Source of the DNA: Hormiphora californensis
Lineage: Eukaryota > Animalia > Ctenophora
Assembly: GCA_020137815.1 (NCBI GenBank)
Contig: CM035360.1
Coordinates: 6,448,001-6,512,000 of the forward strand
Reading direction: 5' to 3'
DNA length: 64,000 nt
Each line of letters begins with the position of its first letter. Positions within the stretch are counted from its first letter, which is position 1. The notes beneath the pieces were generated by a model. That model worked only from the letters and a program-made list of their open reading frames with translations, had not been told where the DNA came from and did not search any database. Made by a program: the position numbers and the translations under genes. Below are positions 15,501-63,345 of the stretch, piece by piece.

Positions 15501-17000
15501 GAAAACAAAAATATGAGCAGAGAGTCACGGAAGGCATAATGGGGGAGCATCAAGCCTTCAAGGAGACACAAGAAATAATAAACTGGGAGAATTACCTTTT
15601 CCCTGGCATCAGCAAGTTTCTTGTTGTATCCAGCCTTCATGTCCTCAAATGAGGGACCCAGTTGAGAGTATAGTTCGTGTAGGTCTAGTAGTCCCTTTCT
15701 GATGAGAAGAGCTGCTATCCGGAACAAGCTATCAGGGGTGCCTTCAGTGTCATTCTGAGAAGGTTGGTGTTGTGTTTTACTTGGCTGAGTTGTGCTGTAT
15801 CTCGCAAAATCAACCGAAGAACTTGGAATTGGTTGAGCGAATTCAACAGAAAACTACTCCCTTTCTTACCTCGTAGAATGCAAAGTTGAACCCCAACATG
15901 TTTGCTAAGGTATCATCCTGTTTAGGAAACAAGTGAACCAGCTCAAGGAAGAAGTCATTCTTATCTGGATAGTTCTGCCATGTCTCCAGAATCAGGTCCA
16001 GGACACGGTTTGGATCCAGGTCAAACCTGGGGAAATCAGGAGAGATCAGATGAGTGAAAAGTAAAAACTGATCATATCATCAAGTTTTTGTTTGCCCATG
16101 TTACATGTTTTGACAATGACCCATTACAAATTAAATCCCTATCTCACCGTCCAATAAGTTTGAGAAGGTGATCCATCATGTGTTGAGGGGTGGGTGGGGG
16201 ATTAGCCAGTTCGGTTATCAGTTTATTATATCCCTCATTCTCCTCCCTCAACAGGTTGAACTTCTGCTGTTTATAGAACAACTTGGTCCGTGTCCGCACA
16301 TATCTGGTAAGAAGAAGGGTGGTGAGAGGCAGAAACAAGAGAAAAAGGAGCTTATAATTGGATCGAGGTGGTATTTACTATTTTTTAAAACGGGGGATCA
16401 AATCATGGCGGCAGCTTACTTAGTGTTGAACTGTTTGCTATTTCCAATAAGTTTCAGCCTTTCCAACGTTTCATACTCTAGTCTTTCTTTGAGAACCTGT
16501 AGACAGAGAAATAAAATCTACGTTAAAATCTAAACCAAAACATATCGGCGGGAAAAAAATACCTTTTTACACCCACTTCTTATTGCAATAACAATCTCAT
16601 TCCCCTAATAATACCTCTTGTTTGATGCTCTTGGTGACAGTCTCTAGGATCTTGATGAAGGTCTCTCTATCCTTGACATCTTCCTTAGTAGAACTCTCTA
16701 TGTCCAACACAGCAAACATATCAGCAATATCAATCTGAGAACAATAATGTGGTATCCTCAAAACACAATCAATCCTGTTCAACAATTGTCTAAACTTCTT
16801 TATCTTCTTTATTTTGACAATTAGATAAATACTGAAAGTTGTCCCATTTTCTAAGTTCTTTTTTGTCCTATTTTCTAAGTCCTATATACCTGCTGCTCAA
16901 GATTGTTGAGGTTTCCCTTTATGAAGGTAGTCACCTCCTCGACCTTCACTTTCTCTGAGTAACACTCCTGGAACATCCGGTAGAGCTTCCGAGTGTCCAT
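9586..17000 (-). CDS. THOC2: THO complex subunit 2, multi-exon
   Basis: Diagnostic peptides: [136 protein letters not shown], and a charged tail. The true stop may be 9527 if one indel is corrected. Confidence 0.95.
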
Positions 17001-17771
17001 GGTGTGTGTGGGAACTATATCTGCAGGGGTGGGTTAGTGGTGTGTGGGAACTATATCGACAGGGGTGGGTTAGTGGTGTGTGGGAACTATATCGGCAGGG
17101 GTGGGTTAGTGGTGTGTGGGAACTATATCGGCAGGGGTGGGTTAGTGGTGTGTGGGAACTATATCGGCAGGGGTGGGTTAGCGGTGTGTGTGTGGGAACT
17201 ATATCGGCAGGGGTGGGTTAGTGTTGTGTGGGAACTATATCGACAGGGGTGGGTTAGTGGTGTGTGGGAACTATATCGGCAGGGGTGGGTTAGTGATGTG
17301 TGGGAACTATATCGGCAGTGGTGGGTTAGTGGTGTGTGGGAACTATATCGGCAGTGGTGGGTTAGTGGTGTGTGGGAACTATATCGGCAGTGGTGGGTTA
17401 GTGGTGTGTGGGAACTATATCGGCAGGGGTGGGTTAGTGGTGTGTGGGAACTATATCGACAGGGGTGGGTTAGTGGTGTGTGGGAACTATATCGGCAGGG
17501 GTGGGTTAGTGGTGTGTGGGAACTATATCGGCAGGGGTGGGTTAGTGGTGTGTGGGAACTATATCGGCAGGGGTGGGTTAGTGGTGTGTGGGAACTATAT
17601 CGACAGGGGTGGGTTAGTGGTGTGTGGGAACTATATCGACAGGGGTGGGTTAGTGGTGTGTGGGAACTATATCGGCAGGGTGGGTTAGTGGGAACTATAT
17701 CTGCAGGGGTGGGTTAGTGGTGTGTGTGGGAACTATATCGACAGGGGTGGGTTAGTGGTGTGTGGGAACTG
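17001..17771. repeat. 36-bp minisatellite x ~21 immediately upstream of the THOC2 ATG
   Basis: Unit GTGGTGTGTGGGAACTATATCGGCAGGGGTGGGTTA, head-to-tail with no spacers. Confidence 0.97.
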
Positions 17772-18040
17772 GGTAATTAGCGGGGGATATCATTGCAGCG
17801 TACAAATGGAGCTAAAAGGGATTGGGTTGCTAGGACGGTAGACACTGAGAGAAACAAGTTGTTAAAAAGTCAAAAATGAGGTAAAAATTTAGAAAATCAA
17901 AAATAAATGAGCATACAGTTCGTTGATTATTGATTAGCTTTCGTATGAAATAAATCTATAAAATAAATTGATTAAAAATATGCATTAAAAAGTATATAAA
18001 TTGATTGAAATTCCTCTCCTTTGATAATTCCGGCGCCCGA

Positions 18041-22122: not shown

Positions 22123-22339
22123 TCAATCGTGCCCAGTGCTGCATGAATCATAAAATATTTTGTGGGTAGACAACGGACATACAATGTTCTACTTCAGTGG
22201 TCCCCCGAACCCACTGAAGTCTAAACCAAAGGCAAAAACGGAAAACCAATCAAGTATTTTTTGCCGTTTATTGGTCCTCAAGGATTAAATTTACTGTTTT
22301 TCATGGCTCAAACGATAGTAATTTTAATGCAGTCACCAT

Positions 22340-22620
22340 TGGCTCGCACTGAGACCAAAAAAAGGCGGGTTTGAGATTTTCAGACGTCAAAAAGTTCTTT
22401 TTTCGAGAGCTTTTTTTCTGATTTTGATTTTTATTTGCAAAATCAAAATTTTGATCTTCAGCTTCAGTCCTGCGCGGCGCGGCGCTGCAATATTTGTTTT
22501 TTCAGCGCGCTCCATTAAAGCAGCGCGCAAAAAAGAAAACTTGCCGCAAAATTTCGTACTGAATTTACTCCGCAAGACATCGTTACTGCAGCAACAGTTT
22601 CCCGGAAATTAATCTTTTCA
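22340..22620. promoter_or_regulatory. Probable bidirectional promoter (CpG/CGCG-rich, T-tracts)
   Basis: Lies between divergent ATGs at 22122 (-) and 22690 (+). GCGCGGCGCGGCGC and TTTTGA repeats; composition resembles 58870-59290. Confidence 0.5.
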
Positions 22621-22689
22621 ACTGTTGACTTAGTCAAACAAACAAACTTAGTCATATTCACTGTTTGTGTTTGCTTTTGTGTCACGAGC

Positions 22690-25600
22690 ATGGAAAGGGC
22701 ATACGATAGGCAGGATCTGAACAAGTTTTTTGCCACTATTCGAAACAAGCATATCCTTTACCGTCCAAGCACCAATATCGATGGGAAGGTTACCTGTCGA
22801 AACGGAGAAGAATACATCGAAAAACCTTACAATGAACATGGCAGTAAGTGAATTCAGCGGTCTTGGCATATTGGTTTTAACGTCTTGAAAACCCTTGTTC
22901 AATTCGAGTGGTCCCAGATTTTAATATCTTTTTCGTTCTGTCAGGCATCGAGGAGTTGCGTCAGGAGTCCAGACTTGTTAGACAGAGACAGTATCTAGAC
23001 TGTGGCCATGGTTCGTCTGTTACCGCAGCGTATAAGACCTTGGGGCGAATAACTCTTGATGCAAAGTCACTAACTTTAGAGGTTTTCAACAACTTCGACA
23101 AATCCCATGAGCGAGAGATCGTTGCTAATGAACATGAAGAAATGGAGAAGCGTCTTTCCTGCTGTTCGGTTGCAAAATGTTGGACAAGATGAGAATCCAG
23201 AGAGGAAACCGACCCGTCGCAGAGCAAAACAATTTGTTGTTAATGAGCATGAGTGGCCTGGAATCAAATCCACCGGTATGTTGTCTTCTTTTTTTACACT
23301 ACTGCCTTTGAATTTACTTTGAATTGATGTGACGAATTTACTATGATTCAAGGAAGTAACAGAGTTCTCTACCATCAGGGTTCGGCCAATTGATGAAGGC
23401 AGTGAACATGACTAACAAACGAGTCTCTGCAACTCGGGGTGGTGCTCCTTATTTCCAGACACTGGACAAAAGCAAAATTGAAGCGGTAAGTTATGTTTCC
23501 CATCGTTCTCTTTCGCTCTTTCCCACCTGCCTTTCCCATCACTCCAGTCTCCATATCTACGGCTCGATTATTAACATGTCCTTGCAGAATATCGAAGATT
23601 CCAGCAGAAATGGCAGCGAAATCCTCCAAGACGAATCATCTATTCTCCAGCCTTCCGCAATCGACAAGTTAGTGATTCTAAAATTTTCTGATGGACAGTA
23701 GTTTTTTGAAAAAATTATGTGACTTTCTCTAGGGATACTACCATGCTTTCGAATAACACCCTCACCCCTTTTTAGTATAAAGAGAGAAGAGGTGGTGAAA
23801 CGATTGGAAGCCTTCCACTACGTCCTAACTGCTCTGTTCTACATCAAAAACAGGGACCTCAAAAACAAGGTAAAATTATCTAAAATTATCGATTCTAAAC
23901 TTAGTAGCTCCTAATAATTTCACCATTTTTGCCTCAGTCTCTATCCAAAACCACCCACTCAGAAACCTGTACTGGTAAAGGAAGAGAAAGAGAGGGCAGA
24001 TTCACTGCACAATGTATCAGAGCGTGCAACCTTCGAAACCAAATCAAACATTCCTGAGTTACCACCCATCAGAGGAGGGTGAGTTTTATCACTCTGAGTT
24101 ATACCTCCTCCCGTAATAGAGAAGGGGAGGTCAGAGGTGTCTCGAGGGCAATCCTGATATAGATTGTAAAAGTGTTGGGTTTCTCAGGTTCTCCTGGAAC
24201 GAGGGTATTCCTGCTTGGCAGAAGATAAAACAAGAGAACGAGTTCCTTGCTACTGCAGCTCTACAGGAGGAAACACGGGATAATGAGAAGGAGAACTCAA
24301 AAAGGTAAAAACAGTCCCCGTGACATTATAACTCAGATATTTCGTCTCTATCCTGTTTCTCTTTGCCATCCCTGGTTTAGTCCTAACAACTCCCCCCTCT
24401 CAGTGCGGAGGCAAGAGACCAGGAGTTCCTGATGAATCTGAGAAAGGATTTCGTAGCGATGCAAGAGAAACTGGACACCCATGTCTACCTTCGTCTGCGT
24501 CGTTTCTTCCGGTATAACTGACAGCCATGACACTAACTGACTAGACAGACCAACCCCCATCCTACCCCACCTTCCCCTGCTGCAGTTAAAACCATCCTAC
24601 CTCTACAGTTTATCAGTTATCTAACCCTCCCCACTTTGTGTTAGCCATGTCCAGGCCGGCGCAGGTGATAAAGGGGACTGGTACCCTAGAGAACCCAAAG
24701 ATCCAATGTCGCTTCTACCCAGAGTGTATTATGTGTGGGTGGTTGGACGAATTGGAGATGGTATCGAGCAAAGAGAACCCTCAGGAGTTTTACTCCTGTC
24801 AGCTGCTCCGGCCAATGATTTTAAATGACATCAAATCGGTGAGACACAACAGGAAGAAGACACTAGCTGAGATGGCGATGGTGGAGCGAGGTCACTGCGG
24901 TGGGATTGACTATGGTCCTGAACGATTGGGCAGCATATGCAGTTTGCTAAGAGGATGCTAGAGAGACAGGCGGCTAATGCTGAGAAACAACCAGAACGTC
25001 CTGAGGAGCCTGAGGAACCCCAGGAGCTTGACCAGGCTCAACATGAGCAACAAATGGCGGCTAAAATTGCGGCTAAGAAGGCGTGGAGGGGAGGCATCCC
25101 AAAGGGTGCATTTGACATGTCATTGGATATGAATGATAGTATTTTCATTGATAAGCCCCAACCGCAGTTCGTCCCCAGCAGTGGGCTAGACATGAGTCTT
25201 GATCCCAATGATAGCTTCTTCAATGAGAAGAAGGGAAACGGCACATTCGATCTATCCATTGATATGAACGACAGTATTTTCGATGTAAACCCGGAGGATA
25301 TTACTGTGCCAAAGCGAGCCCCACAACACAGTACACCTGTTAAACTAGAGGAGCAGTTTATTCTGGAAGGAGCTGTAGATACTGTTATCGATACCCTCTT
25401 CGATCCTCTCTCCTCTATGAGGCTGAAACCTCTTACTGAGACCATGAATTCTCCCCTCCGATCTCCAGGAGACTCTGGTTATCAGTCAAGGAGAGATTCC
25501 AGACTGAACTCACCCGAAAAGAGGGCTTCCCCCGGGGGATTTACACCACCTAAATCAAGCTCTACTGTTGCATGGGTAAGAGTAAGGAAACATGTCATTC

Positions 25601-28600
25601 TGCATCTACTATCTGTTTTGTTCTGGTAAATCCAGACTCCATTAATCATCTTCCCACCAGGGTTCTATTGTTGAGGAGTTGGGTGATTCTCCTCAGAGGA
25701 GGCTCAGTAAGACCCCTGAAGTTGAACTCAAGGACATGTCCATCAGGGATGCAATCGTGGCCGCTCATGAGTCTATCCGATCTCAAGTTCAGGAGAATCC
25801 CCAACTTGCAGCTATCGTTCAGGTAGGTTATTTTGAAATCAAATCAATCTAGATCCTAGGCCCTAGAGAGTAAGCTCAATGATGCTTTTTAACACCAAAT
25901 CATGAACATGTGTTGTCTGACCTCATATGCAAATGTAGAATGTTGAATGAAATTATGGGTGTTTAAATTCTGACTTTCTTCAGAATATTAGCAGTGCTGA
26001 ATCAAGACTCAACGACAGCTGGGATCCACAAAGCTTCCATGAGTGGGCCCGATCCGGTGGTGATGTAAGTTTCCTTTCGACTAAACCATCTCTATTCCCT
26101 TTCTCTATCTCCTTGATCGACTTCCATTTCCCAATTTAACCCCTCCCTATTTTCAGTTGGACCCCAATGTGAGCTGGGACCCTACCATCGAGCACATGAA
26201 ACTGAGAGGTATCCTGGATGAGAGCAAACAACTTCTGGACATGTCCATCGTGAGTGTGGGGGTCATAAATTGGGGGTTTGGGAGTTTGTGGGGTCATGAG
26301 TTGGGGGTTTTCGGAGTATTTGGCTCTTTTCTGGGAGGTTATGTTCCATTCGTTGGAGGTTGATTTCGGTCAATTGCTAATTTCTCTAGTTCCTTACAAC
26401 AACTTCGTTACAGGAGAGTGTAGTTGAGGTGAACGGATTGGATCAGGAGCTAGACGAGCAGCCAGACCCCGTTTATCTCAGTCACGCACTCAACACCGCT
26501 GCAGAGGTGAGAGCTTAGTAAACAAACTCACGACCCCCCCCCCCCCCCCCCAATACTGTCTAGATGCAATTCTATACTGTTAATTGGTGTATTAACCCGT
26601 CCCTTCTCTCTCTCAGCAACTCCAAGGTGAACTCAACCAGTCTGGTGCTCAAGTTCCCAACACCTCGGTAAGATACACCAAGTTTTCTGAGTTTCTCGCT
26701 CTGTTAGTTTGTTTGACTGTTTTGTAACTGTGTTTGTCATCACCAGATCAATGTATTTTGTCATCACATTACACACTCTCTATGTGCATTTTATATCATC
26801 ATTTAGCGATATTGTAGAGCGAATGTCCTAACATACAATACTCAGGGTGATGATCTAGACTCGACCCAGGAGAGTATTTCATATCTCGACGAGAGTACTC
26901 AATCACTCATGGAGAGTCTCAGGACTAGGGGACTTCAAAACATCAGTGTAAGTTTCCATAGCGCTTGCCTTGTATTGGAAGCCCGCACGCGTGGAGTGAG
27001 AGAGAGTACCATTCCGGGACCATTCCTAATCGTATCGTATCGATCTGTCGTCAAACGAGACCTCAGCTTCAGACCTGAATGTAAAACTACTGCCTAGATA
27101 GCCAGATTATAACTCTCTCTCTCTATCAGGCCAGGCAAGGTATTTTGTTGGATGAGAGTTTGTTGGATCCTACCATACCCTCTCAACTCACCGTGAGTCT
27201 TTGTTTTAAAAGTGTTTCATTCTCTAATTTCTCATTACTGGAACATCTGGTTCATATCTGGTTCATATTTGCTATCTTCCCAGTTCCTTTCACTCTAAAA
27301 CTCAAAACAGTACACATATTCAACAGCCTACACTATAATTCACTATCATTTAATCACTCACTCTTTGATAAATCACTAAAAAAGGCAGAAATATTCGAGA
27401 ACACTCGAAAACTTTGCACTACAAACCCATCCACTCACTCACACGACTTTATAAAAAGATGAAAAAGCTCGAGTACACTCAGCATACCCGGCCCCGGATG
27501 ATATAAACTGTCACTATCACACTCATTTAAACTATAGCTTTCTAAATCACTCACTCCTGAAAAGGATAAATACAAGTTGAGTACACTCAACATCTTTTCA
27601 TTACATCACACAATCATCTTTTCATTACATTACACAATCATTCAATCACTCAAAAAGGATGCTCAAGTCGAGAATTCTCGACATCTCTCTAACTATCCGA
27701 TAGTTGCCCAAACAGTTCCTATTTTCACATTTCACAGGTCACATTTCACTCTCTCACACACTCATTCTCTCACACTCACTCACACTCATTTACTCACTCA
27801 CACAGAATCCTAATGAGGATCCTCCTCAACAACACTGCATACCAAGAGTATCATCAGAGGCTGCTTCAATCAGATGTCGCACCCTTCTTCCTCGACCTAC
27901 GTGAATGAGTTGTTAGACAACACAGCTCATGTTAGGCAGGCAGGCAGAATGTGCAATTCCAGCTATGCAAGTGGTCCCAAGTTTTTATCTCCACCTCTAA
28001 ATGATTCTTTTAACCCAACCCTCAATTCCACCCGGTTGGCCGATTGCACTGTGGCACAGAACAACGACACGACTGCATGTTCAAGTGGTGGCCTGAATAA
28101 TACTTCCAGTCTGTTTGATGGCTCCTTCAACAGCACGAAAGGAATCCGAATGAACGTGAGCCCGAAAAAGTCTGGACAAGCAGCTTGTAAAATCCAACCC
28201 GGATCACCTGCCAAGAAACTTCAGGGTCCAGCAGCTGTCGTCCAGGCTAATCAGTCCTCAACTGCTCGACGTGGAAGCACCCTTGACCAAACTCTCGATT
28301 CACTGGTCAGTACTACTCCAGAGAAAGTTGCTGCTGCTAACGTGTGTAAGGCCTCTGAGAATGCGCAGTGTTCTCTCCTAGAGGATGCAGCAAAAGAGAG
28401 TGCAGCGGATACATCTACTGTTGAAAAACTGAATTCGACTGGCTGGGGAAACTCAATTCTCCTTGAGGTCATCAACCTTGACTGTTCTGTCGGTGAACTC
28501 TCCAAGTCAGTTGACGAAGCAGAGAAGAGCCAAGCGGAATCTCTGCTCAGTTTGAGTATCATGAGACGACAGCAAGAGCTGATACACGGAGAGGGTGAGG

Positions 28601-31600
28601 ATGGCATTACTATTCGACAAGTAAACGGTGCTAGGGGAATCCTGATTGAAGTTAACTCCAACCCAACCTTCATCAACAACGCATCTCCTGGGGATCACTT
28701 GTTGGAGAAGTTAGCTGACCTTGTAGAGAAAAGGCACAAAGAGTTTGAGCACCACATTACCGAACAGTTGGAGAGTAGGCTGGACAAGCTCGCTAGTATG
28801 CTGGCTGGATCTGGAAAGGTTAACCGTGATGTCTCTACCCAAGCAGCTAGCTCCTCGACAAAACTACCCAAACCCCGTATCTCTCTAGCCAACCTAGCAA
28901 GAACACTGACTGCTACTAAACTGGCTGATAAACCGGATGCAACCCCTGCTGCCAAGAATTGGGGAAAGATCACCAGGGCAGAAGCCTTCAGTCGCCACCT
29001 TCAACCCGTGTACGACAATAGGAAAATCAACTTGACCCGATACAGGCCTCGAGTTCTCAATCCTGGTGATTTCACTATCGAGAAACCCCAATCAAAAACT
29101 ATCGTGAAGAACAACACAAAGCTGGTTAGAAAAACAGCCTTCAGACGCAACGATCGACCTGTTTATGACGGAAGAAAAATTCGCCTCAACCGAGAAAAAG
29201 TACGAAAGCTCGATCAAAATTACTACTACTAGAGACAATGAACTTTTGATTTTATCTCCAGCTTGATGCTGATTTATCCGATTGATCATGATTTATTTTA
29301 CACACTTTTGATCACCCTTGAGATACTTTTTTTCTGTTTCATCCTCCATTTTAGTAACCCTCATACTCCACATCCACTTCACTCTCTATTTGTCATAGCT
29401 TTAGTTTATGGAACCATTGGTTGACTTGAAAGAATTAGACAACACCCCTGTACGGCAACTGAAAAGTGTGAGAACTCCAAAACCAAACTCCAGACGCCGA
29501 CAATCTAGAGAATCACTGAGCTCAAGTGACAGCGATACAGATAGGCGAGCACATCTGAAAACACCTGTTAGGGAATTTCACGAGAAGATGGATAAGTTTT
29601 TCGAGAAGTCTCAAAATTCATCTGGGCTCGAGGAAGAGCAACATTACTTCAAGAGACATCCGCAATTTCATTCCACGAGGAAAGGTCGGGCTAGGCCCAA
29701 TCTGGATGATTCTCCTCAACAACTTATTCTCTCACCCCAAAACTCCGACTCTTCTCTTCCCATTGATTCTCTGCTGGACATTCCTACATTTGGGGACATT
29801 CTGGATCAGATGCTACCTACCAAACCAGAGAAGCCCAAGCACCACATGCCAACTAAAAAGGTGTCCAAAAAGGTTCGAATTCAGCTACCAGGTGCTGAGA
29901 TCCCAGTGGATATCAAAGTCAACCATGGTCCCGAGGAAAGGAGTCCAGCTTTCCAAGACGAGGAGTTGCTTCACAAGCTGGACAATCTTATCCTGAACAA
30001 GCAGAAGAATTTCGAAAAATACATTTTGAGTATCTATGACAAAAAGTTGGATCAACTGATCAACAACGTCAATAGTAGAGATTCGTGATTTTATTGTGGC
30101 TGAGCCATATTTGACTGTCCTTGACAAATTGATTATTATTTCACCATCTTTCAAAATACATTTCATAGTTTCGCTCCCCAAACAACACCCCCATCCCCCG
30201 CACTTCCTCTCATGCTCGCTACCTTTTAGACCATGGACATTGATCCTGACCATGACCTGCTCCAAGTATCTCTTAGCAATCAATCGGTCGAGGAAGAACG
30301 CTTCGAGATGCAACATGGACCTCCAGAGAAACGTCGACTGTCAGAGCCTGTTGTGAATCGAACAATCTCAGACGCAGTAACTGATCAGAAACAGCTTTCA
30401 GATACCGATATTAATCCTAATAACGATGAGCTAAATTTAAACCGTCTGTCTAACTCACAGTCTCGGTCAACCTGGAAACGGCTCGCAGATCAAGGGAAAC
30501 TAAGCTCTGAGGAGTCGTCAGAATCGATAGCTAAAACTGTATCCGAGTATCTTTCCAACCTGGAATCAAAACTTCGAACAGCTATTTCAATCTCTGGCAA
30601 GTCAGATAAAAGTATGGCCTCTGATCCCGATAGTGACTGGGTTTCAGATTCGAACGAGTCCTTGCATTTGCCGTCCCATCCTGCCAATATCTCAAGTGGT
30701 ACCAGGCCCACTAAAAGTGAACAATCTATTCCAAACATTTTCAGTTGCTCAAAGGTTGCCACTGCTTCTTCAGATCTATCATCGTCAAATATCAGGGCAC
30801 CAAACAACTCTTTAAGCTCCGTCAATGCTAGCTCCAGTCTTCTTCTCAACTCTGCTTTTGTCCCACCGCGTATATCCAGTCGGGATCTTCAGGATAAGTT
30901 TTCCCTTCACGCATCGTCTGCAGCAGCTGAACAATCCGAAACAGACAGTAGTGAAGAGCTAGTCCTTGGAATTACACCCCAGCCTTACTCAAAAGAACAG
31001 AACAAATCCAATATTTCGAGACTCTCCTTCAGCCAGTTTATGTCCATTCCAGAACCGGATCTTTCACAAGTTTCCAAGCACTCCATTCGGCTTGAGCCTT
31101 TGCAGGTAACATCAGTTCAGTCAGTCTCTTCAGTCCAGAAGGAAAAACCTTTCAAATCGAGCATAAAAAATCACTTAGCATCGCATCAACGAGTTGTAAA
31201 ATGGATCGATTCTGAAGCAACAAGCTCTTCTTCGTCAGACCTTGATGTGTATGACCCAGTTGCCTTTTCACGTTGGAAAACTGCCCGGCAGGCCAAGCTG
31301 GATAAACTATTTTCTCGATTTGATAGATTGCATTCCATCATTGAATCATTGACATTTAGTGATAAAGTAAATTTCTCTGATCGTTATCATTGATTAATTC
31401 GCCAACGTTCAAAAAAATTTCCCCCTTTCACTGTAAACTTTATAGATAAAGTAGGAATTTTTGAAGTTGTCACCCCCCTGGGTGGCGCGCGACATATTCT
31501 ATTTGCACGCCGGAAACTTGTTTTGGCTCTCAGGCCTTTGTTTCTTGTCCAATTTCGTCAAACAAAAACTTTGTGGACTCACAAAATTATGCTCTTTCCG

Positions 31601-34600
31601 ATGATATGCGGTTTTTTACCGAAAAATGAGACTGAGAAGAAGTGGGGGCTGTCACGAGCAAATACGACGCCGCGCGTGAAAAGGGGGTGACAACTTCAAA
31701 AAATCCGACTTTACTCTTTAACTTTCCTAGCCACTCACCCCACCTCTTCACTCTATAGGATTCTATTTACTAATCATGGCTACCCGCCCCGACCAACTGC
31801 TTTACGACATTGAGGATGAAGTTGACAAGGTTCTCAAGCTCCTGGGAATTGAGCACGACTGGTCTGAGGAGGCCCAGGAAGACAAAATCCTGGATGCTAT
31901 CATAGAGCAGGTCGACCAAGAGGACCTCGAGGATGCCGCCATTCCTGAGATCACCCCTGAGCTTCAGGCTGTTATGGAACGTCTCACAGTCCAGGACCGA
32001 GCGTACACCTGGTACTCAAATGCCACCTTCGAGAAGGTCTACCCCAAGTTGCAGGAGATGGAGAGCACTCTTCCTATCTGGCAGATCCACAGTTTCCCCA
32101 ACGCCAAACTTGTCGAGTTCGGTGACCAGGCTAAGAATGATGACTTGATCCTGCCCAGGGAACAGCTGAGGTATTTGATTGAGCTGACAGAGCAGGAGAA
32201 ACCCTTCTCCTTCATCAAAAAGGACCAGAGAGAACAGAGGCTGAAGGAACTCCGGTCTGTTGTGGACATTGAGGATGTTGTGGAGTTCGGAAACGATGAT
32301 CTTCTCGTTATTTGGGCCCTCCAGGAGAAGAGCAGTGCACCTGGGTTTGGAAACAACTTTGGAGAAAGCTGTGGAAAGAACATCCAGATTATCACCCAGC
32401 CAATCTACATGGGTGATAATGAAGATGAAGATCCCACTGGTCTGATGGCTAGTCTCAGAAAGATTGCCCGTCTGAAACAGGATGAGATCGAGATGTACTA
32501 CAAGAAGGTCGGCAAGGCTAATGACGAGGTTTTCAAGATCAGTAAAATCATCACCACCACCGCTAGCATGAAGGAACGAGAGGAGGGACTGGTAGCGAAG
32601 CTGAAGGCCCGTATTGCCACTGGTATTGAAAACCTGACGAACTTGGAAAAAATGGTCGATATGGGCAAGAGGTCCGGTCACAACGAATATGTCAAGTTTG
32701 CTGATCAGCTTGGAACTCTGATGAAACGAGTCGCCAAGAGGACCAACGACCACAGGGCCCTCATCTCGGACCAGACCGCCAAGCTGCGCCACGCTGTGGA
32801 GAAGAAGGCCAAGATGCAGACTAACATTGGTGCAATTAGCAAAAAGGTGAAGAACTTGGAGGAGGAAGAACGAAGAGATACTGCTGCTCTTGATGCTCTG
32901 AAACGACAGAACCAGGACCTCCGACAAAAGTATGAGGAGCTGTCGGGACGATCTGCTGATGTGCTCTACAAGACTCACCGAAAGAAGGAGGCTGCACCCA
33001 ACCCAATGGCTGAGGTGAACCTACCATACGAAGATGTGTCTGCCCGGGATGCTCATTACTACCAGAATAAGCTGAAGAAGTACCGACGTCACTCCCAGGT
33101 GCACAGGGGAAGTATCGCCAGCATGATGAAGTAAATATATTTGAATCCGAGAGACTTATTTTAGCAAAAACAAAACCATGTACAGAGTGTGTTTAATAAT
33201 TCAAGTCATTTCACCCCTTTTATTCATTGAATGTCAAAGTTGTGTCCAACATTTTATTTGTTTGTTTTTGTGTCAATCCATTATCCCATTCAAGTTCCAC
33301 CCATTCACTCACAACACACACTCACATATGTAGGTTTATGACTATAGACTGTTACAATGGCATCTGACAAGACCCAAGTTTTCTATGCTGAGGCTCCTTC
33401 TGGAAACAAAGAGCAGGTTCTTGAGTTTGACACCTGTTGTGGAGGAAAGATCAAGGTGGTGAACTGCCCCAGTTATGCTACTCAGAACCCCCAGGAGAAG
33501 AAACAGGCTCTCTTGGAAGCACTAGACGCCAAGCAAACTGAGATCGAGGCTCTTCACAAGAAGCACAAGGACATCCAGACTACTCGTGCTGACCTCAGCG
33601 AGCGTGCTGCTCTTGACACCAGCCAGTTCGAGATCAAACGGAACAGGGCCTTGTTCATGGCCATGCAACGAGACTTCATTGATACGAAGCTGGCGTACTG
33701 TGCAGAAGAAGCTCAACGGAGAGTTCACGGAGTCCAAGGACAACACCCGGGTTAAATCCTACTTCGAGGATCCTTGCAGGTCGGATCACCACCCAAGAGA
33801 AGGAGCTGAAGAAGGTCTCCAAGGACAAACAGGCTCTGGAAGAGGAAATGGTGGCTTTCGAGGCAAAGCTGGACGAAGTTATCGGGGAATACACCCGGGC
33901 TGTCTACAAGAGCAAACACTCCAAGCTGGTACTGGACCGTATGCAGGCCAGAAACAAGCTCCTCGCTGCCGAATGCAAGAAACTAGCCAAGGGTTCCGCT
34001 GGTATCCACAAGAGCCACTTCCGTCACTAAAGATCCATTGTACAGACTTTGATTTTAAATGAGAGAGTAGAGTGAGCCATTATAACTATTTACCGTCTTT
34101 TTATATTGACATCCATTTGAGATTGTGTTTTATTTTCACCCCACGGCCACCCATCCAATGCTGACCACTTCTATTCACCCCATCCCACTCACTGCTGACC
34201 TACTTTTGTTCATCCCTTCCCCACTCACTGCTGTTCACTTAGGATTCATCCCTTCCCAACTCACTACTGACAACTTTTTGTTCATCCCTGACCACTTGAG
34301 TCCATCTCCTTCCCACTCACTTCTAACGACTTTGCAGTACCTTATCTCACCCACTCACCTCATTTTATAGGTTTTATGTACCACCATTTATTGACTGTAT
34401 CACAACTTGTACCACGATGGCTGGCGATGATGAATTTTACAAAAGACATATTCAAGACATATTAACTTCGGCGGAGGATCGTCCTGACGATACTTGAAAG
34501 GAGGTTAACTGTGGCAGAGGATCGTACCCACAGCGGCTGACGATATTCAAAGTAGGTCAACTGTGAAGAAGGATCGTCCAACAGCGGCTGGAGACTGATG

Positions 34601-37600
34601 ACTTTTACAGAAGACATAGTTGGAAACATGATAACTGTGAATCGTCCCACAGTGGCTGAAGAGTTTCAAAGGAGGCGAACTGTAGAGGAGGATGGTCCCA
34701 CAGTGGCTGAGGATATTGAAAGGAGTGTAAGTGAGGAGGAGGATCTTAAATCAGTTTGGGACGAAATAGAAGATTACCTGAGAACTCCCAAGACGGAGAA
34801 TAATCGTCTCATAAAGCCAAAGCCAATAATAAAGCCAAAGCCAATAATAAAGGAAGAGGATCGTCCCACAGTGGCTGACGATATTGAAAGGAGGTTAACT
34901 GTGGAGGAGGATCGTCCCACAGTGGCTGACGATATTGAAAGGAGGTTAACTGTGGAGGAGGATCGTCCCACAGTGGCTGACGATATTGAAAGGATATTAA
35001 TTGAGGAAGAGGATCGTCCCACATTGGCTGACGATTTTCAAAGGAGGTTAACTTTGGAGGAGGATCTTCCCACAGTGGCTGACGATGTAGAAACTCGCCT
35101 GAGAACTGAGGAGGATTGTCCCGCAACGGCTGACGATATCGAATTGAGGCTAGGTGAGGAGGAAGAGGAGGATCGTCCCACATTGGCTGACGATATTGAA
35201 GCGAGTGAGGAGGTTATTACTAAATCTATTTGGGACGATATTGAAGATTACCTGAGAGCTCCCAATCCCATTCCTGAGGCTGCCGACATTCGAACACGAA
35301 GATGGGATAGTGAGGTTGAGGAACTCGAAAGGAAAATGGCTGAGAGCGAGTCAGATGAGTCTGAGTTTGATTATGGCGAATATGATCCATTCGACTATTG
35401 CGGCGTCCCAAAAATGGCATTCCAGTTCCCCAATGCAGCTCACCCCGTGTACGAACATGGAGAGGAGGTTAAAGAATTTAAAGTGGGGGACAGATTCCAT
35501 GAGGATATTTTCCCAGCAGCCACCCCTTGGGCCGGAGAAGGAGCCCTTAAAAGGTACGGCGAATATTGGGAAAATGCTTCTGATTTTCCTCTGATGTACG
35601 CAAACCATCGTGATGAAGAGGTGGAAGATAAACGGCACCCCCTCCGTATTCTTTTCGGACACGAGGAGCCAAGAGAAAGGTTCTACCCGGATCCTCGTCC
35701 TATCGGTCCCCAGCGTAAAGATGTAATGAAGTACAAGGTCGATGGTGTATTGAACGAGGACATGGAAGATGTTATGCATGAAATGATCTCCAACCACTAC
35801 AGATATGGTGTAGAGCTTAAACATGACCGTGTTAAAGAACCTTTGAAACATGACGAGGGTAAATATGAAATTGTTAGGAAACCTCTCAGACCTGGATTTC
35901 AAGAACACATCAAAAATAATCAAGGGGAGTATTTCCAGAACTTCTACAAGAAGCACCCTCTGTATGAGTACCCTGAGGTACCAGAGGACTTCTATGTTGA
36001 AGAGGTTCGCCGAACTGAGTCTGAGGAGAACGCACGGGCTGCTCAACAGGCCTTTGAATCTACCAGATCTATGCAGAAGCCTTCTCGATTACCAGGCACT
36101 TTTGCCCTCAATGATGCCTCTGGTTATCAGTCTCTGGCTGGATCTGGACAATTCATTGGCACAGGAAAGAATAAAGCAAGGGGTGATACGCGTCTTTCCC
36201 CTGATTTTGATGGACCCAGGTCCGAGTTTTCAGAGAGTAATGGAGGGAAGATAAAGATCGTGACTGATCGAGAGTTCTCCTATGGTGGCCTTGGAGACTG
36301 TCTTATCACTGGCACGCTCTTCGCAGAAACTGCTGATATTTCCACTGCCTTCAAATCAATTGTTGGTGTAATTGACCGGAAAACAAGATCAAGTGGACAC
36401 CAGCTATGAAGAGCTACATGTTCTCGAGTTGGAGGTTGGTTCTCTCAGGCAGCAACTTACCGAATTTGTTCAGGAAAGTGACTTCGATCAGGGTGCCTTT
36501 ACTGCTGAGGAGAAGGAGCTTCAGGCCAAATTGGAGAAGGCCAAGAAATCCCTGAACGAACTGAATGATGGTATGGAAATTGGTTATGTCACTGGGTTCA
36601 AGGAGGATTATGGAACTCCAGAGAAACTGATTGCTGAATTGGAGGCCCTTATGGAGGAGCAAGAAAAGGATTTACCGGGACTGGAGGAGGAATTTAAGAA
36701 ACTGAGTGACGCCAAGGACATAGTTGAGACACAAACCAACCAACTGAGCAACCAGGTTGAAAACAAGATGAAGATAAACAAACAAGCCGATCCGTCAGTT
36801 TAACACCCTCAGGTGCAAGAAGGACGCTCTTGCTGACAAATGTGAAGAGATCCGGGGTAGCGCAACTGCTGCGTTTGAGGCGTATAAAGATCTTTATTAC
36901 ACCCTTGATGAACTCATGCAGGACAACTCGGTCCTAGTTAATATCAACAAGAAGCTCGCTAAAAAGATCACATTTTTGGAAGATGCCAAAGTTCACTCCT
37001 ACATCAAGAAGTAATAATCGACCCTGACTGCACAAGGGAGGAGTACAATCAGATCTTTAAAAAGAAGTATGACACTATAATTGAGAATGGAAGAGCGAAA
37101 GCGGCAGAACTTCCAAGAAATGGCTGACGCAGCCAAAGAAAGTCCAATGGTTAAGGGGGAACGTCCAGCTCCTGAGGAAGGATCCAAAACGAAGAGTAAT
37201 CTTATTAGCCGTTTCACTGCCCTTCGTAAGGCAAACGCCAAGAAGGCCAAGTCTGCACTCGAAACCAAAACCACCTTGGCCAAGAAGACCTATTCCAAGT
37301 CTGGTAATTGGAAGTAAAGAGATGTTATCAAACCAAAATTTGTGTTAATTCGTGTATGTTTACTATTTTAACCATTTCATATTGACCATTTAACAGTTCA
37401 ATGTGTTTCATTCATCCCCACTATCACCCCATACACCCCATACAACCCCCTACCTTGACCCGGCCACCTATCATTAATCACACCAATCTCATCCTCTGTA
37501 GGTTTATGTTTTTATTACACTGAATTCGTGATTTTTACTACCAAACGCGTCACTACAACCAAATATGTCAACAAGCCAGGAGGAAGTTTTTGAGGAGGTT

Positions 37601-40600
37601 CTCCCTGAGCCTGCAGCCGGAGAATCTAGCCCTGCCCCTGCAGCCGGAGAATCTAGCCCTGCCCCTGCAGCCGGAGGATCTAGCCCTGCCCCTCCTTCCC
37701 CCGCCAAACCCGGACCATCAGGCCTTGCCAAGACAACAGGTCCCTCTAAGAAATTGTCCGACTCTCCAAAGACGATTGATGGAGATACGTACTATGTTAT
37801 CAGACCTGAGGGTTACAACGGGGAACAGAGTTTTAGTGTGAAGCAGTGCTGTGGCAATGAGCTGAAGATCGTTATAAAACCGGAACACTACTTCGGAGGT
37901 GGAGGTCCTCGCGAACAAGAAACAGCAAGAATTGGATGCTGTCAACAAGAAGTGTACCGCACTAAGCAAGGAGAAGCAGGCCATCAAGGAGAAGATAAAG
38001 GTGTCTGGAAATCAGATCTGTGACGCTAAAGAACGTCTCCGTGAGATCAAGATCCAGCTGCTGTTCAAGCTTGCTCGACTTGCCACCTGGCAAAGGAAGA
38101 AGGAGGTGGAGGCGGAGATCCGACCTAATAACACTGATCCAAAGGAGCATTACCTGACCCAAGAAAAGAAACTCCGGGATATGGAAAAGAAATACAGGGA
38201 ACAGAGTGAAAAGGTCATGGGTCTGAGGGATAATATTAGGTCTACAATTGAGGAACATGTTTTCTTGGATTCACTAGGCGAGGATCTAAAGATTGAGAAT
38301 AGGAGGGTCCGAGATCAATCCCGTAACAACCAAGTTGTTTTGGAGAGTTTGAAACAGCAAAATGCCGAGTTGGAGGCCAAATGTAAGATCTACTGGGAAA
38401 AACATTCCGAGACCACGGCACAGGTAGAGGAGTTAGATGCTGAAGCGGAGAACATCGCTCGAGAAAATGACAAAATTGTAGCGCAGAATGAAAGGATGGC
38501 AGTGATTGCCAAAGAAACTATCTCTTCTGCCTCCAAGAAGGTTCAGCAAATGGCAGGTGTGATCTCTGCATTGTCTTCTGGCCCATCTCCCAAGACTGGC
38601 CCACCGCCCAAGACTGGCCCATCTCCCAAGACTGGCCAACCGCCCAAGACTCGTCCATCTCCCAAGACTGGCCTAGCTCCCAAGACTCGTCCATCTCCCA
38701 AGACTGGCCTAGCTCCCAAGACTGGCCTAGCTCCCAAGAATAGGGCCCCCAAGTCTCCCAGGACCCCCGGCCCAAGGAAGTCAGGTCCTCCTACCCCCTT
38801 GACCGCTAATCTCCGACGATCGGGTGGCGTGAGAAAGCCAGGTGAAAGATTGCCTACTAAACCCTCTCAACAGAAGGGGCCTGCTACAGGAAAAAGGAAG
38901 GCTACTGGAGCACCCACAGCCTCGGCTGCCCGTGCAGGAGCCAAAAAGGTCAGTATCGTTGAAGTTGCTGCCTCCGCGCCTACAGATGCAGAGATCAGGG
39001 CAGAAAGAGAGCGACAAGAATTTGAATACGAAGAACAAATGATGGCTATTCAAGAGGCAGAAGACGAGAGCAACAGAGAATTTGAGAGAATTGAGTATGA
39101 AGAAAAAATGAATGCCATTCGAGAGGCCGGTACAAGGGCCCGAGCAACATTAGCAAAGAACGGCGCTGCTCCAGCACAGGTCTCCAAGACCCCAAGTGAC
39201 CTAATGAGACGGCTCCAAATTATTAAGGACAAACAAAGGGGTAACGACAAAATTAATGCCCTGCGAGAGGCTGCTGCACAGGCCCGGAGAACTGCTCCCC
39301 AGGTGGATCCCAAGGTCAAAAGTGATCTGATGAAACGGCTACAGGCTGTAAAGGACAAACAATACCAATGAAACTGAGTCCTGGCCAAATTCCAGTGAAC
39401 TTGTTCGCTGATCAAACCCATTAGATGTATTGTTATTTCACCAGAATTGTAATTGTAATTGAGTGATTATGTGTAATCTTGATTTGTTTATCCCTGAATC
39501 TTTTAGCTTTGAATATAATGTGTTTTATTATCCCCAAAATCCCAATCGCACCCCCACCCTCCCACAAAGGCACAAACCTCACACGGCGTGCCTGGTGAAA
39601 TTTTAACACGACCTAGCATGCGACGGGAAACCACCACTTGTACGTGGTAGCTGAGGGTCTACAGAATGGCGCTACGGTGCGGGAAAAAACATTCCATTCC
39701 CTAAAATCTTTTTTTTTACTTTTATTTGATTTGGGTCAAAATTGGCTATATTAAACGTGGTCCCGAAAAATCCATAATGACTTAGCACACGAAATATGTC
39801 ACCCCTACCTATTTTTGCACGTAGAATCGATTGCCGTTAAAGTCGAATCTCTAAAATGACTGTAAAATGGTGAAAAATTGATTTTTTACCATTTTTTGGA
39901 GGTTTTTAGCCCCTAAACCATTGAAAACGTTGAGATAGGAATTTGAAACTAGTGCCAATCGTTAAAATGGTCATTTTTCTACCAAGAACCAAGTTTTCGT
40001 GTATATCCGATTTATGGTTAGATTTGGGCAAATTGTTGAAATCTGCCAACTAGGAGAACCGTAACTTGATTTTCTTGTTTTTTGGATTTTGGCATTTTCG
40101 ACAAACTTCTGATTGAAATGGTCAATCGGGACCATGCTTAAGTTGTTTATGGGACAATTTTCGACTAAAATCCAAGATTTCATACCAATCCAATAACAGA
40201 TCGTTGATTTATAGAAAATTTAAGTAAGCAAAACGGTGAAAATAAGCAAGAAAAGTTGTCATTTTGACCGTTTTGCCTACTTAAATTTTCTATAAACCAA
40301 CGATCTGTTATTGGATTGGTATGAAATCTTGGATTTTAGTCGAAAATTGTCCCATAAACAACTTAAGCATGGTCCCGATTGACCATTTCAATCAGAAGTT
40401 TGTCGAAAATGCCAAAATCCAAAAAACAAGAAAATCAAGTTACGGTTCTCCTAGTTGGCAGATTTCAACAATTTGCCCAAATCTAACCATAAATCGGATA
40501 TACACGAAAACTTAGTTCTTGGTAGAAAAATGACCATTTTAACGATTGGCACTAGTTTCAAATTCCTATCTCAACGTTTTCAATGGTTTAGGGGCTAAAA

Positions 40601-43600
40601 ACCTCCAAAAAATGGTAAAAAATCAACTTTTGACCATTTTACAGTCATTTTAGAGATTCGACTTCAACGGCAATCGATTTTACGTGCAAAAATAGGTGGG
40701 CGTGACATATTTCGAGTGCTAAGTCATTATGGATTTTTCGGGACCACGTTTAATATAGCCAATTTTGACCCAAATCAAATAAAAGTAAAAAAAAAGATTT
40801 TAGGGAATGGAATGTTTTTTCCCGCACCGTAGCGCCATTCTGTAGACCCTCAGCTACCACGTACAAGTGGTGGTTTCCCGTAGCATGCTAGGTCGTGTTA
40901 AAGTTTCACCAGGCACGCCGTGCTCACCCATCGTCCCAAAAAACACAACAACAGACATTCACAATACAACTCCTCCCACGCATACACCATTTCTCTGTAT
41001 TTCAATTGATCTATCGAACTCTCACAGAGCGCATGAAGTGACGCTGTGAGAGCGACACAATGTTTCACCCTGAGATCACCCCTGAGCTTCAGACTCTCAT
41101 GGAACGTCTTACAGTCCAGGACCACGCATACACCTGGTACTCAAATGCCACCTTCGAGAAGGTCTACCCGAAGTTGCAGGAGATGGAGAGCACTCTTCCT
41201 ATCTGGCAGATCCACAGTTTCCCCAACGCCAAACTTGTCGAGTTCGGTGACCAGGCTAAGAATGATGACTTGATCCTGCCCAGGGAACAGCTGAGGTATT
41301 TGATTGAGCTGACAGAGCAGGAGAAGCCCTTCTCCTTCATCAAAAAGGACCAGAGAGAACAGAGGCTGAAGGAACTCCGGTCTGTTGTGGACATTGAGGA
41401 TGTTGTGGAGTTCGGAAACGATGATCTTCTCGTTATTTGGGCCCTCCAGGAGAAGAGCAGTGCACCTGGGTTTGGAAACAACTTTGGAGAAAGCTGTGGA
41501 AATAACATCGAGATCATCACCCAGCCAATCTACGTGGGTGACATTGATGATGATGAAGATCCCACTGGTCTGATGAATTGTCTCGTCAAGATTGCCCATC
41601 TGAAACAGGATGAGATCGAGATGTACTACAAGAAGATCAGCAAGGGTAATGACGAAGTGTTCAAGATCAGTAAAATCATCACCACCACCGCCAGCATGAA
41701 GGAACGAGAGGAGGGGCTGGTAGCGAAGCTGAAGGCCCGTATTGCCACTGGTATTGAAAAACTGGAGAACTTGGAGACAATGGTCGATATGGGCACGAGG
41801 TCCGGTCACAACGAATATGTCAAGTTTGCTGATCAGCTGGGACCTCTGACGAAACAAATCATCCAGAGGATCGTCGACCACAGGGCCCTCATCTCGGACC
41901 AGACCGCCAAGCTGCGCCATGCAGCGGAGAAGAAAGCAAAGATGCAAGCTAACATTAGTACAATCCGCAAACAGATGAAGAAATTGGAGGAGGAAAAGCA
42001 AAGAGATGCCGCTGCTTATGATGTTCTGAAACGACAGAACCAGGACCTCCGACAAAAGTATGAGGAGCTGTCGGGACGATCTGCTGATCATGTGCTCTCC
42101 AAGGTCCCTCAAAAGAAGGAGGCTGCACCCAACCCAATGGCTGAGGTGAACCTACCATACGAAGATGTGTCTGCCCGGGATGCTCATTAACGGGTGATAA
42201 CTAAAAGATGTCACAAATTTAAAACAGCTGTAGAATTTTTCCCTTTTGAGATACAGCTTCGGGCCAGTTATAAAACGATTTTTCAGACAATTTTGAATCG
42301 GAATAATATACCGGCAAAGACTAAAAAGTTCGTTTTCATTGCGATATCACATCATTTCCTTTTGCCCCACCAAAGCATTTAGTACGTGATATTTACACAC
42401 TTTTCTAGCACCTCTAGCACCTGTTCTGTTCAAGATTCAGCTTCGGGACAGTGACAGAATGATTTATCAGACAATTTTGAACGAAATTAACTTTGTTTCA
42501 AACTTCATAAGTCTCAATTTCCTGATCAGAATCTTCTGTAACAAAGCGTAGTTTACAGGTAATTTGGGAAATCGCCATTTCGACGATCTCTTGAAACATT
42601 AATGACCGTGAAAACCAATTACTTAATGGGCTAAAATGTTCAAACTTGGCAGTTATGTTGGCTATGGCATGAACAACCAAAGCTCCAATTTTTAGAATTT
42701 TATCTCATTGGAAAAGTCATTTCTGATCACATAGAAGTTTCAAATCTCCGTACTACATGCTTTGGTGGGACAAGATGAAATGATCAGATATCGCAATAAA
42801 AATGAACTTTTTAGGTTTTGCCGGTATATTATCCCGATTCAAAATTGTCTGAAAAATCGTTCTATAACTGGCCCGAAGCTGTATCTCATAAGGGAAAAAT
42901 TCTACAGCTGTTTTAAATTTGTGACATCTTTTAGTTATCACCCGTTACTACCAGAATAAGGTGAAGAAGTACAAGCGTGGGGAACAATGGTCAAGGAAGG
43001 CCATTCGAAGACCAAAAGTGATCTCATGAAACGGCTGCTGGCTGTAAATAAGGACAATAGAAATAGATGAAACTATCCTGGCCAAATTCCAGTGAACTTG
43101 TTCGCTGATCAAACCCATTGATTTTATTTCACCAGAATTGTAATTTTAATTGAGTGATTGTGTGTTACCTTGATGTGTTTATCCTTGAGTACTGTTTTAG
43201 TTTTGAATTTGTGTTTTATTTCCTTCGAAACCCCAATCCCACCACTCACACCCCACTCTCTCCAACCCTCACCCATCGCCCCACAACAACCCACAAACAC
43301 AACAACAGACATTCACAACACAACTCCACTCTCCCACACAATTACCTGTTCTCTGTGTTTCACCCTCCTTCCAGGGACGACAAGGAGAAATTCACGAGGA
43401 GGTTCCACGCTCTGAAGCATGCCCCTGCCCTCAGCCTGGGTATGGTGGATGTCCGCAAGGTTGACAGGACAACACGAATTGTGGACAGCGACAAGAAGAA
43501 ACCATCTTCTAAACAGGAATGGTAAGTTGTTTTAACCAACCCCCATTCTCACTCCCCTTTGGTTACGAAGTCACTCCTATTATTGCATGAGTTAGCGCAG

Positions 43601-63267: not shown

Positions 63268-63345
63268 CTATGTCCGATGATGCAGGAATAGTGGAGAAAG
63301 TGTTAGTAACTAACTAAAATTCCCGTTTATTTAGTTACAGCCAAC

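Follow-up and report, generated by a model that had tools for sequence, protein, structure and literature searches.

Can one intron of a ctenophore gene hold an operon? The question is raised by a stretch of the Hormiphora californensis genome of 64,000 nucleotides (contig CM035360.1 of assembly GCA_020137815.1, positions 6,448,001 to 6,512,000; hereafter the window, in whose coordinates all positions are given), in which a host gene had been predicted to be split by an 18.9-kb intron carrying a row of eight genes on the host's own strand. Nested genes and spliced leaders are already published for H. californensis, which has 1654 host genes, 2357 nested genes and a widespread trans-spliced leader (PMC8527503). 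An operon would be new for ctenophores; none has been reported in these animals (PMC7986045).

The host gene is laid out in the window as follows.

22690-24511, plus strand: 5' part of the host gene, from homologue alignment and GT..AG joints visible in RNA contigs
...-23667, 23776-23869, 23963-24078, 24188-24304 and 24404-24511, plus strand: last exons of the 5' part, all short
24512-43374, plus strand: host intron of 18,863 nt (~18.9 kb), GT at 24512-13 and AG at 43373-74
43375-43521, 43740-43866, 43978-44053 and 44156-44250, plus strand: exons of the 3' part, the last ending in the stop codon

The predicted donor (TTC TTC CG|GT, 24511/24512) and acceptor (AG|G GAC GAC, 43374/43375) are present and match in phase, and the junction between them was read in RNA. 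The RNA is that of a close relative and not of H. californensis itself: four marine metatranscriptome runs (X1, X2 and X3 among them) hold contigs that are 90-95% identical to the window, and these were aligned to positions 23500-29499, gene order being read in the window DNA alone. Contigs from X1 and X2, two independent marine metatranscriptomes, continue past 24512 with loose ends that correspond to the first 30 nt of the exon at 43375/43376 (27-28 of 30 positions identical) and that have no second match anywhere in the window. One of them, contig 8 of X2 (904 nt), extends 587 nt past the junction, a length consistent with the four 3' exons and a UTR. The exon ending at 24511 and the exon at 43375 are each single-copy in the 110.7-Mb genome. 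Splicing of 24511 to 43375 produces the host mRNA.

Protein homologues lead to the same gene. Full-length ctenophore homologues, four in number and 514-534 aa long, match the window's exons in collinear order on either side of the intron (in tblastn searches, full-length P0007, P0009 and P0010 follow the 5' part from residue 1 to about residue 384), and the homologous proteins run unbroken across the junction as ...R(I/F)(L/F)R|D(D/G)(K/R)EKF.... Exon 43375-43521 on its own suffices to retrieve them. The junction contigs and this collinearity establish one host gene across the intron: a gene of about 520 aa that is conserved throughout the ctenophores, with its ATG at 22690, its stop at 44250 and one giant intron, the others being short (~90-220 nt), as had been claimed. 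The ATG lies one nucleotide past a pyrimidine-tract AG (22687-88), and the mRNA contig of a host homologue (L011) carries a 30-nt leader, ending in AATTGAG, 8 nt upstream of its own ATG.

The identity given to the host in the original prediction, CCDC60-like, is weak. Against Pfam DUF4698 (PF15769, CCDC60; curated cut-off 28.6 bits), one distant homologue cluster (P0007 and P0014) gave a match below the cut-off (17 bits, E 0.003, residues 341-505 on HMM positions 325-479), the nearer homologues P0009, P0010, P0015 and P0016 gave none, and single host exons matched no Pfam family even at E 10. A six-frame, genome-wide DUF4698 search did not match the host locus; its sole match was a low-complexity ORF 1.9 Mb away. 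The host family gave no match when its profile was searched against PDB, an ESM Atlas search with a host homologue returned no usable match, and a metagenome scan with the family returned one mRNA contig. Because RefSeq names the Bolinopsis orthologue "uncharacterized protein", the cilia/testis-type promoter that had been ascribed to the host is conjecture.

The first two nested genes fall largely within the span covered by the RNA contigs.

24645-29319, plus strand: nested gene A, nine exons (24645-25575, 25661-25822, 25984-26064, 26157-26249, 26414-26506, 26617-26667, 26846-26947, 27130-27192 and 27806-~29319), ATG 24647, stop 29230-32
29399-30200, plus strand: nested gene B, an ORF with CDS 29408-30088, 226 aa

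All eight exon joints of gene A were read in contigs, most of them in all four runs, and its exons, bounded by AG and GT, are all in phase 0. In four runs of four, a cis-splice leads from exon 27130-27192 to the AG at 27804-05, and 27813, which had been listed as a gene start, therefore lies inside gene A. A leader had been predicted at the AGs preceding the nested genes. It was found in X1 and X3 at 24644 (AG 24643-44) of gene A and at ~29404 of gene B, and 27805 proved to be a cis acceptor. In gene B, trans-splicing uses either of two AGs, 29397-98 and 29403-04, that lie 6 nt from each other; gene A's leader stands upstream of 29397 in X1 and upstream of 29403 in X3. Thus, mature A and B mRNAs start with a trans-spliced leader at AGs 2-9 nt upstream of the ATG. 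The leader is an identical 21-25 nt on both genes, in two runs from two studies; it is not encoded on the plus strand anywhere in the window, and it has 195 genomic copies as compared with 0 for a control. It is a genuine second spliced leader of this genome. We considered the dispersed copies as leader RNA genes and rejected them: nothing is conserved after ...TTGAG, and GT follows at the chance rate.

The remainder of the intron contains the following features.

30230-31446, plus strand: nested gene C, ORF only, CDS 30233-31393, 386 aa
31447-31713, no strand assigned: MITE-like insertion between C and D, terminal inverted repeats of 31 nt
31759-33300, plus strand: nested gene D, intact, CDS 31776-33134, 452 aa, acceptor-like AG 31757-58
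33334-34100, plus strand: nested gene E, head motif and coiled coil, ATG 33357, stop 34028-30
34371-37350, plus strand: nested gene F, ORF only, ATG ~34417, last stop 37315-17, acceptor-like AG 34369-70
37502-39500, plus strand: nested gene G, ATG 37565, stop 39369-71, acceptor-like AG 37500-01
39582-40922, no strand assigned: foldback element of 1.34 kb, 662-nt arms 98% complementary
41060-43250, plus strand: H, a broken D/G chimeric duplicate, a partial D copy fused to a copy of the 3' end of G

Gene C has an acceptor-like AG (30228-29) 3 nt upstream of its ATG, behind a tract that is 82% pyrimidine. Gene D has full-length homologues in P0001 (86% identity, 457 aa) and P0002 (73%, 457 aa), and a further homologue in P0003; the whole genome holds two copies of it, both within this intron. 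Gene E is weakly similar to D and G; it has two acceptor-like AGs (33332 and 33346), and its frame changes near 33750. Gene F has 51-nt coding repeats at 34527-35260 and a C-terminus like that of G; its frame is broken at 34417-34600, ~36385, ~36795 and 37012-37080, and it may be decaying or badly assembled. Gene G, which is single-copy in the genome, has an intact orthologue of 595 aa (P0017, from a 2021-nt metatranscriptome contig) that aligns to 37565-37891 and 37893-39374. Finally, H repeats D 31944-33058 at 41069-42189 with 93% identity, is interrupted by a foldback element of 760 nt (42188-42947), matches D again at 42945-42972, and at 43013-43243 copies the 3' end of G (39317-39552). 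Searches beyond these families were negative: Pfam gave sub-threshold noise only on ten nested ORFs, Rfam and tRNA scans of the window gave nothing, a metagenome scan with the D family gave nothing, and an ESM Atlas search with D gave no usable match; the AlphaFold model of D (pLDDT 51.6) was too poor for a fold search.

The gene list of the original prediction thus needed two changes. Its starts at 24647, 29408, 30233, 31776, 33357, ~34417 and 37565 stood, 27813 fell, and the D-like partial copy at 41060-42190 was missing from it. What the intron holds is a compact row of seven same-strand protein-coding genes (A to G) and one broken duplicate (H). By the nested-gene standard of Schultz et al. 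(2021), A and B qualify by RNA and D and G by intact orthologues, with C, E and F standing as ORFs only.

Could an assembly error have put the cluster between the host gene's two halves? In favor of such an error are the 98% foldback and local duplications toward the 3' end of the intron and the many 1-nt frame breaks in the region, but we consider it very improbable. The window contains no Ns. Host exons anchor the cluster on either side, since the verified acceptor of gene A is 133 nt from the host donor and the copy of the G 3' flank (43013-43243) abuts the host acceptor, and the nested genes are absent elsewhere in the genome, as the copy numbers of D and G indicate. Moreover, a Mnemiopsis gene model begins exactly at the exon that follows the junction, a hint that the intron may be long in that species as well.

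The frame breaks also bear on whether the whole cluster is alive. Compared with the relatives' open frame, gene A has surplus single bases at 24911, 24933, 27820 and 27885, and gene G has one at 37892 as compared with its relative; E and F have further breaks and a stop. We rejected introns of only 21-29 nt as an explanation for the shifted frames of E, F and G, since for A and G comparison with RNA or protein of the relatives reveals single-base differences. If the breaks in A, E, F and G were real, part of the cluster would be dead, consisting of decaying lineage-specific genes, and function in H. californensis would be confined to B, C, D and the host. That most breaks lie outside homopolymers speaks for this view, which is compatible with both an operon-like unit and ordinary nested genes but which we judge unlikely. 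Long frames (452, 603 and 490 aa) remain open beyond each break and show conservation with expressed orthologues, and all five comparable breaks (four in A, one in G) are a surplus base, as expected of an uncorrected long-read consensus; B, C, D and every host exon are clean.

The arrangement of the genes is regular. As predicted, a pyrimidine-rich tract and an AG precede each start: the 40 nt upstream of the AG contain 60-82% pyrimidine and no more than 10% G, and among all 1366 intronic AGs a pyrimidine share of 70% is attained by just 1.8%. Long plus-strand ORFs open at the seven starts, placing the nested genes on the host strand, and the claim that they lie a few hundred base pairs apart is borne out by stop-to-next-acceptor gaps, from A to G, of 166, 141, 365 (98 without the MITE), ~200, ~340 and 184 nt, 3' UTRs included. 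Contigs of gene A terminate about 80 nt or less upstream of the gene B acceptor. Minus-strand genes flank the plus-strand block on both sides, and hence 22145-22690 is the only sizeable spacer upstream. For chaetognaths, an operational rule counts as operons genes with gaps of <250 bp of which at least one carries a leader (PMC12460157); we count this locus under that rule, and under the co-oriented, ~250-nt-or-less spacing of operons resolved by spliced leaders (SL), with gaps of 141-365 nt. We are highly confident of the structure as a whole, that is, of the host, the giant intron, the nested row and the leaders on A and B.

What, then, is the source of the nested mRNAs? The existence of the host mRNA implies that RNA polymerase traverses all seven cistrons in the sense direction, and a polycistronic primary transcript would therefore be made whenever the host is expressed. 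The cluster is most likely operon-like: transcription would begin upstream of gene A, the favored site being the divergent promoter region at 22145-22690, and nested mRNAs would be released by 3'-end cleavage and leader trans-splicing at each pyrimidine-rich AG. Host mRNA would then come only from those transcripts that escaped all these sites and underwent cis-splicing from 24511 to 43375. As for how the cluster arose, two lineage-specific families (A/B; D/H, E, F, G) would have been duplicated in tandem where they now stand, and transposon insertions would have added to the row. The geometry makes it plausible that one pre-mRNA serves both products through competition between cis- and trans-splicing, and on balance, with modest confidence, we hold that the structure acts as a co-transcribed, operon-like unit whose nested mRNAs derive from a shared transcript.

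Some observations weigh against co-transcription, among them that every RNA contig comes from the close relative. Contigs of gene A turn up in each of the four runs, at greater depth than the sparse host contigs, which fits a promoter of its own as well as efficient processing. The upstream donor at 24511 would be expected to favor cis-splicing to 24645; among the RNA contigs over 23500-29499, none joins the two, and such a join would be out of frame. No contig over the same span bridges two cistrons or their spacer, assembled poly(A) or total RNA contigs being ones that rarely retain precursors. Nor is a leader by itself proof of an operon, because at least 56% of Hormiphora mRNAs bear one (PMC8527503). 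The cluster could instead consist of ordinary nested genes, all or most of them with a compact promoter inside the 3' region of the gene before it and a leader that trims a short outron, the host transcript passing through without being their source. We regard this as quite possible though not probable. It accords with the 2357 nested genes of the same genome, many of them parallel to the host, for which operons were not invoked (Schultz et al., PMC8527503), with the near-ubiquity of leaders in H. californensis, with the depth of gene A, and with transposon insertions in the C-D and G-H spacers that have not obviously killed the genes downstream. It must also squeeze a promoter and an outron into spacers that leave ~80-200 nt, upstream 3' UTR included, place those of gene A in the 133 nt between the host donor and the acceptor of A, and account for seven genes of seven on one strand in a block bounded by opposite-strand genes.

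The operon-like interpretation has a stronger form, which we put forward tentatively and consider rather doubtful: a true ctenophore operon, the first of its phylum, set in an intron, with a promoter at ~22.2-22.7 kb, a precursor of ~22 kb, most copies of which are converted by leader trans-splicing and cleavage into seven mRNAs for lineage-specific coiled-coil proteins, and a rare read-through that yields host mRNA. How much host and cargo is made would then depend on a race between cis- and trans-splicing, and internal sites of this kind might favor the second leader, the one found on A and B.

The locus has partial counterparts elsewhere. Like the nested genes of Schultz et al. (2021; PMC8527503), of which many run parallel to the host in this same leader-bearing genome, the transcripts here lie inside one intron. 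Here, however, seven genes and a duplicate share that intron, as compared with a mean of ~1.4 per host and four in their figure, and all are co-oriented with operon-like spacing; operons are not mentioned in that study. In SL-resolved operons of nematodes, tunicates and chaetognaths, too, genes are co-oriented with gaps of ~100-250 nt and receive a leader at an AG just upstream of the downstream ATG. Here, in contrast, the whole run lies inside another gene's intron with exons flanking it, the precursor is deduced from the host junction, no leader specialized for downstream genes has been identified, and none of the phylum's genes have been reported as operons (PMC7986045). Same-strand nested genes of humans and Drosophila resemble this case in that the host transcript reads through nested 3'-end signals and skips nested splice sites, but those genes have their own promoters and caps, do without trans-splicing and usually occur one to an intron.

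If the nested mRNAs are cut from the host precursor, ctenophores, among the earliest-branching animal lineages, would use operons, and an intron would be an operon container in which expression of host and cargo is traded off by the choice of splice sites. The locus is unusually clean for testing this, being a single plus-strand block with opposite-strand borders in which the host junction and two trans-splice sites are verified. Even if this is ordinary nesting, it is an extreme same-strand case, and it illustrates how an intron can grow about 100-fold through tandem duplication of young genes.

The genome that holds the window (G000, in which the window is C11:6448001-6512000) comprises 110.69 Mb in 45 contigs. 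RNA evidence came from four marine metatranscriptomes from three studies, whose Logan contigs were placed on window positions 23500-29499. At 90-95% identity to the window, they evidently derive from a close relative and not from the sequenced species. The original prediction had placed about eight same-strand genes in one long intron of a CCDC60-like host gene. In the window sequence, the donor at 24511/24512 (...TTC TTC CG/GT) and the acceptor at 43374/43375 (AG/G GAC GAC) match in phase. Contigs from two of the runs (X1 and X2) that cover the exon at 24404-24511 carry on beyond 24512 with 30 letters, which match 43376-43405 with two or three mismatches and match nowhere else in the window. 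One of them (X2 contig 8, 904 nt) extends 587 nt past the junction, a length compatible with the four 3' exons (445 nt) and a UTR. These contigs, together with homologous proteins that are continuous across the junction, bear out the predicted splice and show that the host is cis-spliced across the nested cluster. Upstream GT..AG joints in the RNA set the host exon ends at 23667, 23869, 24078, 24304, and 24511. The exons on either side of the big intron are each single-copy in a genome search, and the remaining host introns measure about 90-220 nt, short as predicted.

The 48-aa exon at 43376-43519, used as sole query, retrieved a homologue of 514 aa (P0007), which in turn retrieved two others (P0009, 531 aa, and P0010, 530 aa). 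The clusters of these three proteins include XP_063691060.1 ("uncharacterized protein"), from Bolinopsis microptera, as well as a 523-aa transcript product of Mnemiopsis type. The homologues are uninterrupted across the junction and collinear with the window exons from the ATG at 22690 to the stop at 44248-44250, and their source contigs (about 1.8-2.1 kb) are of spliced-mRNA size. A Mnemiopsis gene model, KAL5248265.1, starts exactly at the exon following the junction, which hints that a long intron may lie at the same place in that genus as well. Membership of DUF4698 (the CCDC60 family) could not be established for the host: single host exons gave no match, a genome-wide HMM search found a match elsewhere but none at the host locus, and four of six homologues had none. 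P0007 and a further homologue, P0014, scored 17 bits, below the cut-off of 28.6, and this weak match (residues 341-505) does cover the junction. Searches of the PDB and the Atlas with the host family found nothing.

The first two predicted nested genes, at 24647 and 27813, are one nine-exon gene, A. Its exons, all of phase 0, are joined in RNA contigs at 25574/25660, 25817/25979, 26064/26157, 26249/26414, 26504/26615, 26666/26845, and 26947/27130. All four runs also show 27192 joined to the AG at 27804-27805 (the 14 intervening letters are window 27806-27819), and therefore the two starts belong to a single gene. The other genes and two insertions are as follows.

Nested genes B to H and insertions in the host intron
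29408-30088, + strand: B, a clean single ORF
30233-31393, + strand: C, a clean single ORF
31447-31713: MITE insertion
31776-33134, + strand: D, intact, with full-length homologues at 86% and 73% identity
ATG 33357, + strand: E, an ORF-based model with frame changes
ATG about 34417, + strand: F, an ORF-based model with frame changes
37565-37891 and 37893-39374, + strand: G, aligned to its orthologue P0017
39582-40922: 1.34-kb foldback insertion (98%), in the first copy of the duplicated G 3' tract
41060-42190, + strand: H, a copy of D residues 57-428 (88% protein identity)

P0017 is an intact 595-aa protein encoded by a 2021-nt contig. H is broken by a 760-nt foldback element and fused to a copy of the G 3' end that adjoins the host acceptor. 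Window 39310-43340 is locally rearranged: two copies of about 330 nt (the G 3' end and the tract preceding the host acceptor), one at 39317-39552 with 40936-40986 and the other at 43013-43243 with 43290-43340, flank the partial D copy. A genome search found no copies of D or G elsewhere. Pfam gave no family for any nested protein; A and B have a C-terminal motif in common, and in D/H, E, F, and G a common small head motif precedes a coiled coil.

Compared with the open frames of relatives, the assembly carries a single extra base at each of 24911, 24933, 27820, 27885, and 37892, with further breaks in E and F at about 33750, 34417-34600, about 36385, about 36795, and 37012-37080; B, C, D, and the host have none. 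Relatives' RNA or protein is open at these places. Since the frames of A, E, F, and G stay long and conserved past each break, we favor assembly indels as the probable cause. Real decay, with several nested genes freshly broken, is a possible but less favored explanation.

Trans-splicing occurs at A and B. A leader (...AACTACAACGTAAAACTATTTATTG, then AG) stands ahead of 24643 in X1 and a third run, X3, and the same leader stands ahead of 29397 (X1) and 29403 (X3) at B. The predicted leader sites at 24644 and 29404 were thus read in RNA, along with one at 29398, whereas that at 27805 is cis-spliced. At B the AGs at 29397-29398 and 29403-29404, 6 nt apart and each used in a different run, represent a tandem-acceptor choice. 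This leader differs from the published one and has 195 genomic copies, against 0 for a control pattern. Its sole copy in the window lies on the minus strand at the head of a LINE, and so the leaders of A and B come in trans. The LINE-like retrotransposon (54400-58578, minus strand) has ORF1 at 57141-58535 and ORF2, with APE endonuclease and reverse transcriptase, at 55325-57226; its 5' end (58538-58578) is a full copy of this second leader. The 195 copies have nothing in common past ...TTGAG, and just 10 are followed by GT, the chance rate; hence most are retrocopy heads rather than leader genes. The published Hormiphora californensis leader has a copy at window 63239-63267; there (63228-63272) the DNA encodes it right before an ATG (...TTTGAG CT ATG) with no GT donor. 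Unlike the dispersed copies, seven published-leader copies within 15 kb (C13:3,181,000-3,196,000), each followed by GT, may be an array of genuine leader RNA genes. As for the host, its orthologue's mRNA in a distant ctenophore opens with a leader-like 30-mer located 8 nt upstream of the ATG, and in the window ATG 22690 is preceded, at a distance of one nt, by an AG with a pyrimidine tract.

Consistent with the predicted tracts, each gene start is preceded by an AG with 60-82% pyrimidine and no more than 10% G in the 40 bases ahead of it; of the 1366 AGs in the host intron, only 1.8% reach 70% pyrimidine. Stop-to-next-acceptor gaps, 3' UTRs included, are 141-365 nt (the largest is 98 nt without the MITE), and A contigs stop about 80 nt or less upstream of the B acceptor. 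On one side of the + strand block lies an HhH-motif gene ending near 22145, and on the other a nucleoporin-like gene at 45.1-47.7 kb, both on the minus strand. Farther upstream, a long + strand tandem repeat (16931-17838; unit ...GVWELYRQGWVS...) has several open frames and the strongest GC skew in the window (0.33).

Because the host is cis-spliced across the cluster, its expression requires polymerase to read every cistron in the sense direction. We lean toward the view that the nested mRNAs would be processed from such polycistronic RNA, and in the version we prefer initiation would occur at the host promoter. The main alternative, which we consider possible but somewhat doubtful, is that compact internal promoters drive the nested genes and trans-splicing merely trims their 5' ends. 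Among the relative's contigs over 23500-29499, none bridged two cistrons and none joined 24511 to 24645.

Nested genes and leaders are already published for this genome: one paper (PMC8527503) lists 1654 host genes with 2357 genes nested in their introns, many of them in the orientation of the host, and gives the share of Iso-Seq reads with a leader as at least 56%; the word "operon" does not occur in it. Operons have been stated to be unreported in ctenophores (PMC7986045). By the operational rule applied to chaetognaths (PMC12460157), this ctenophore locus would count as an operon.
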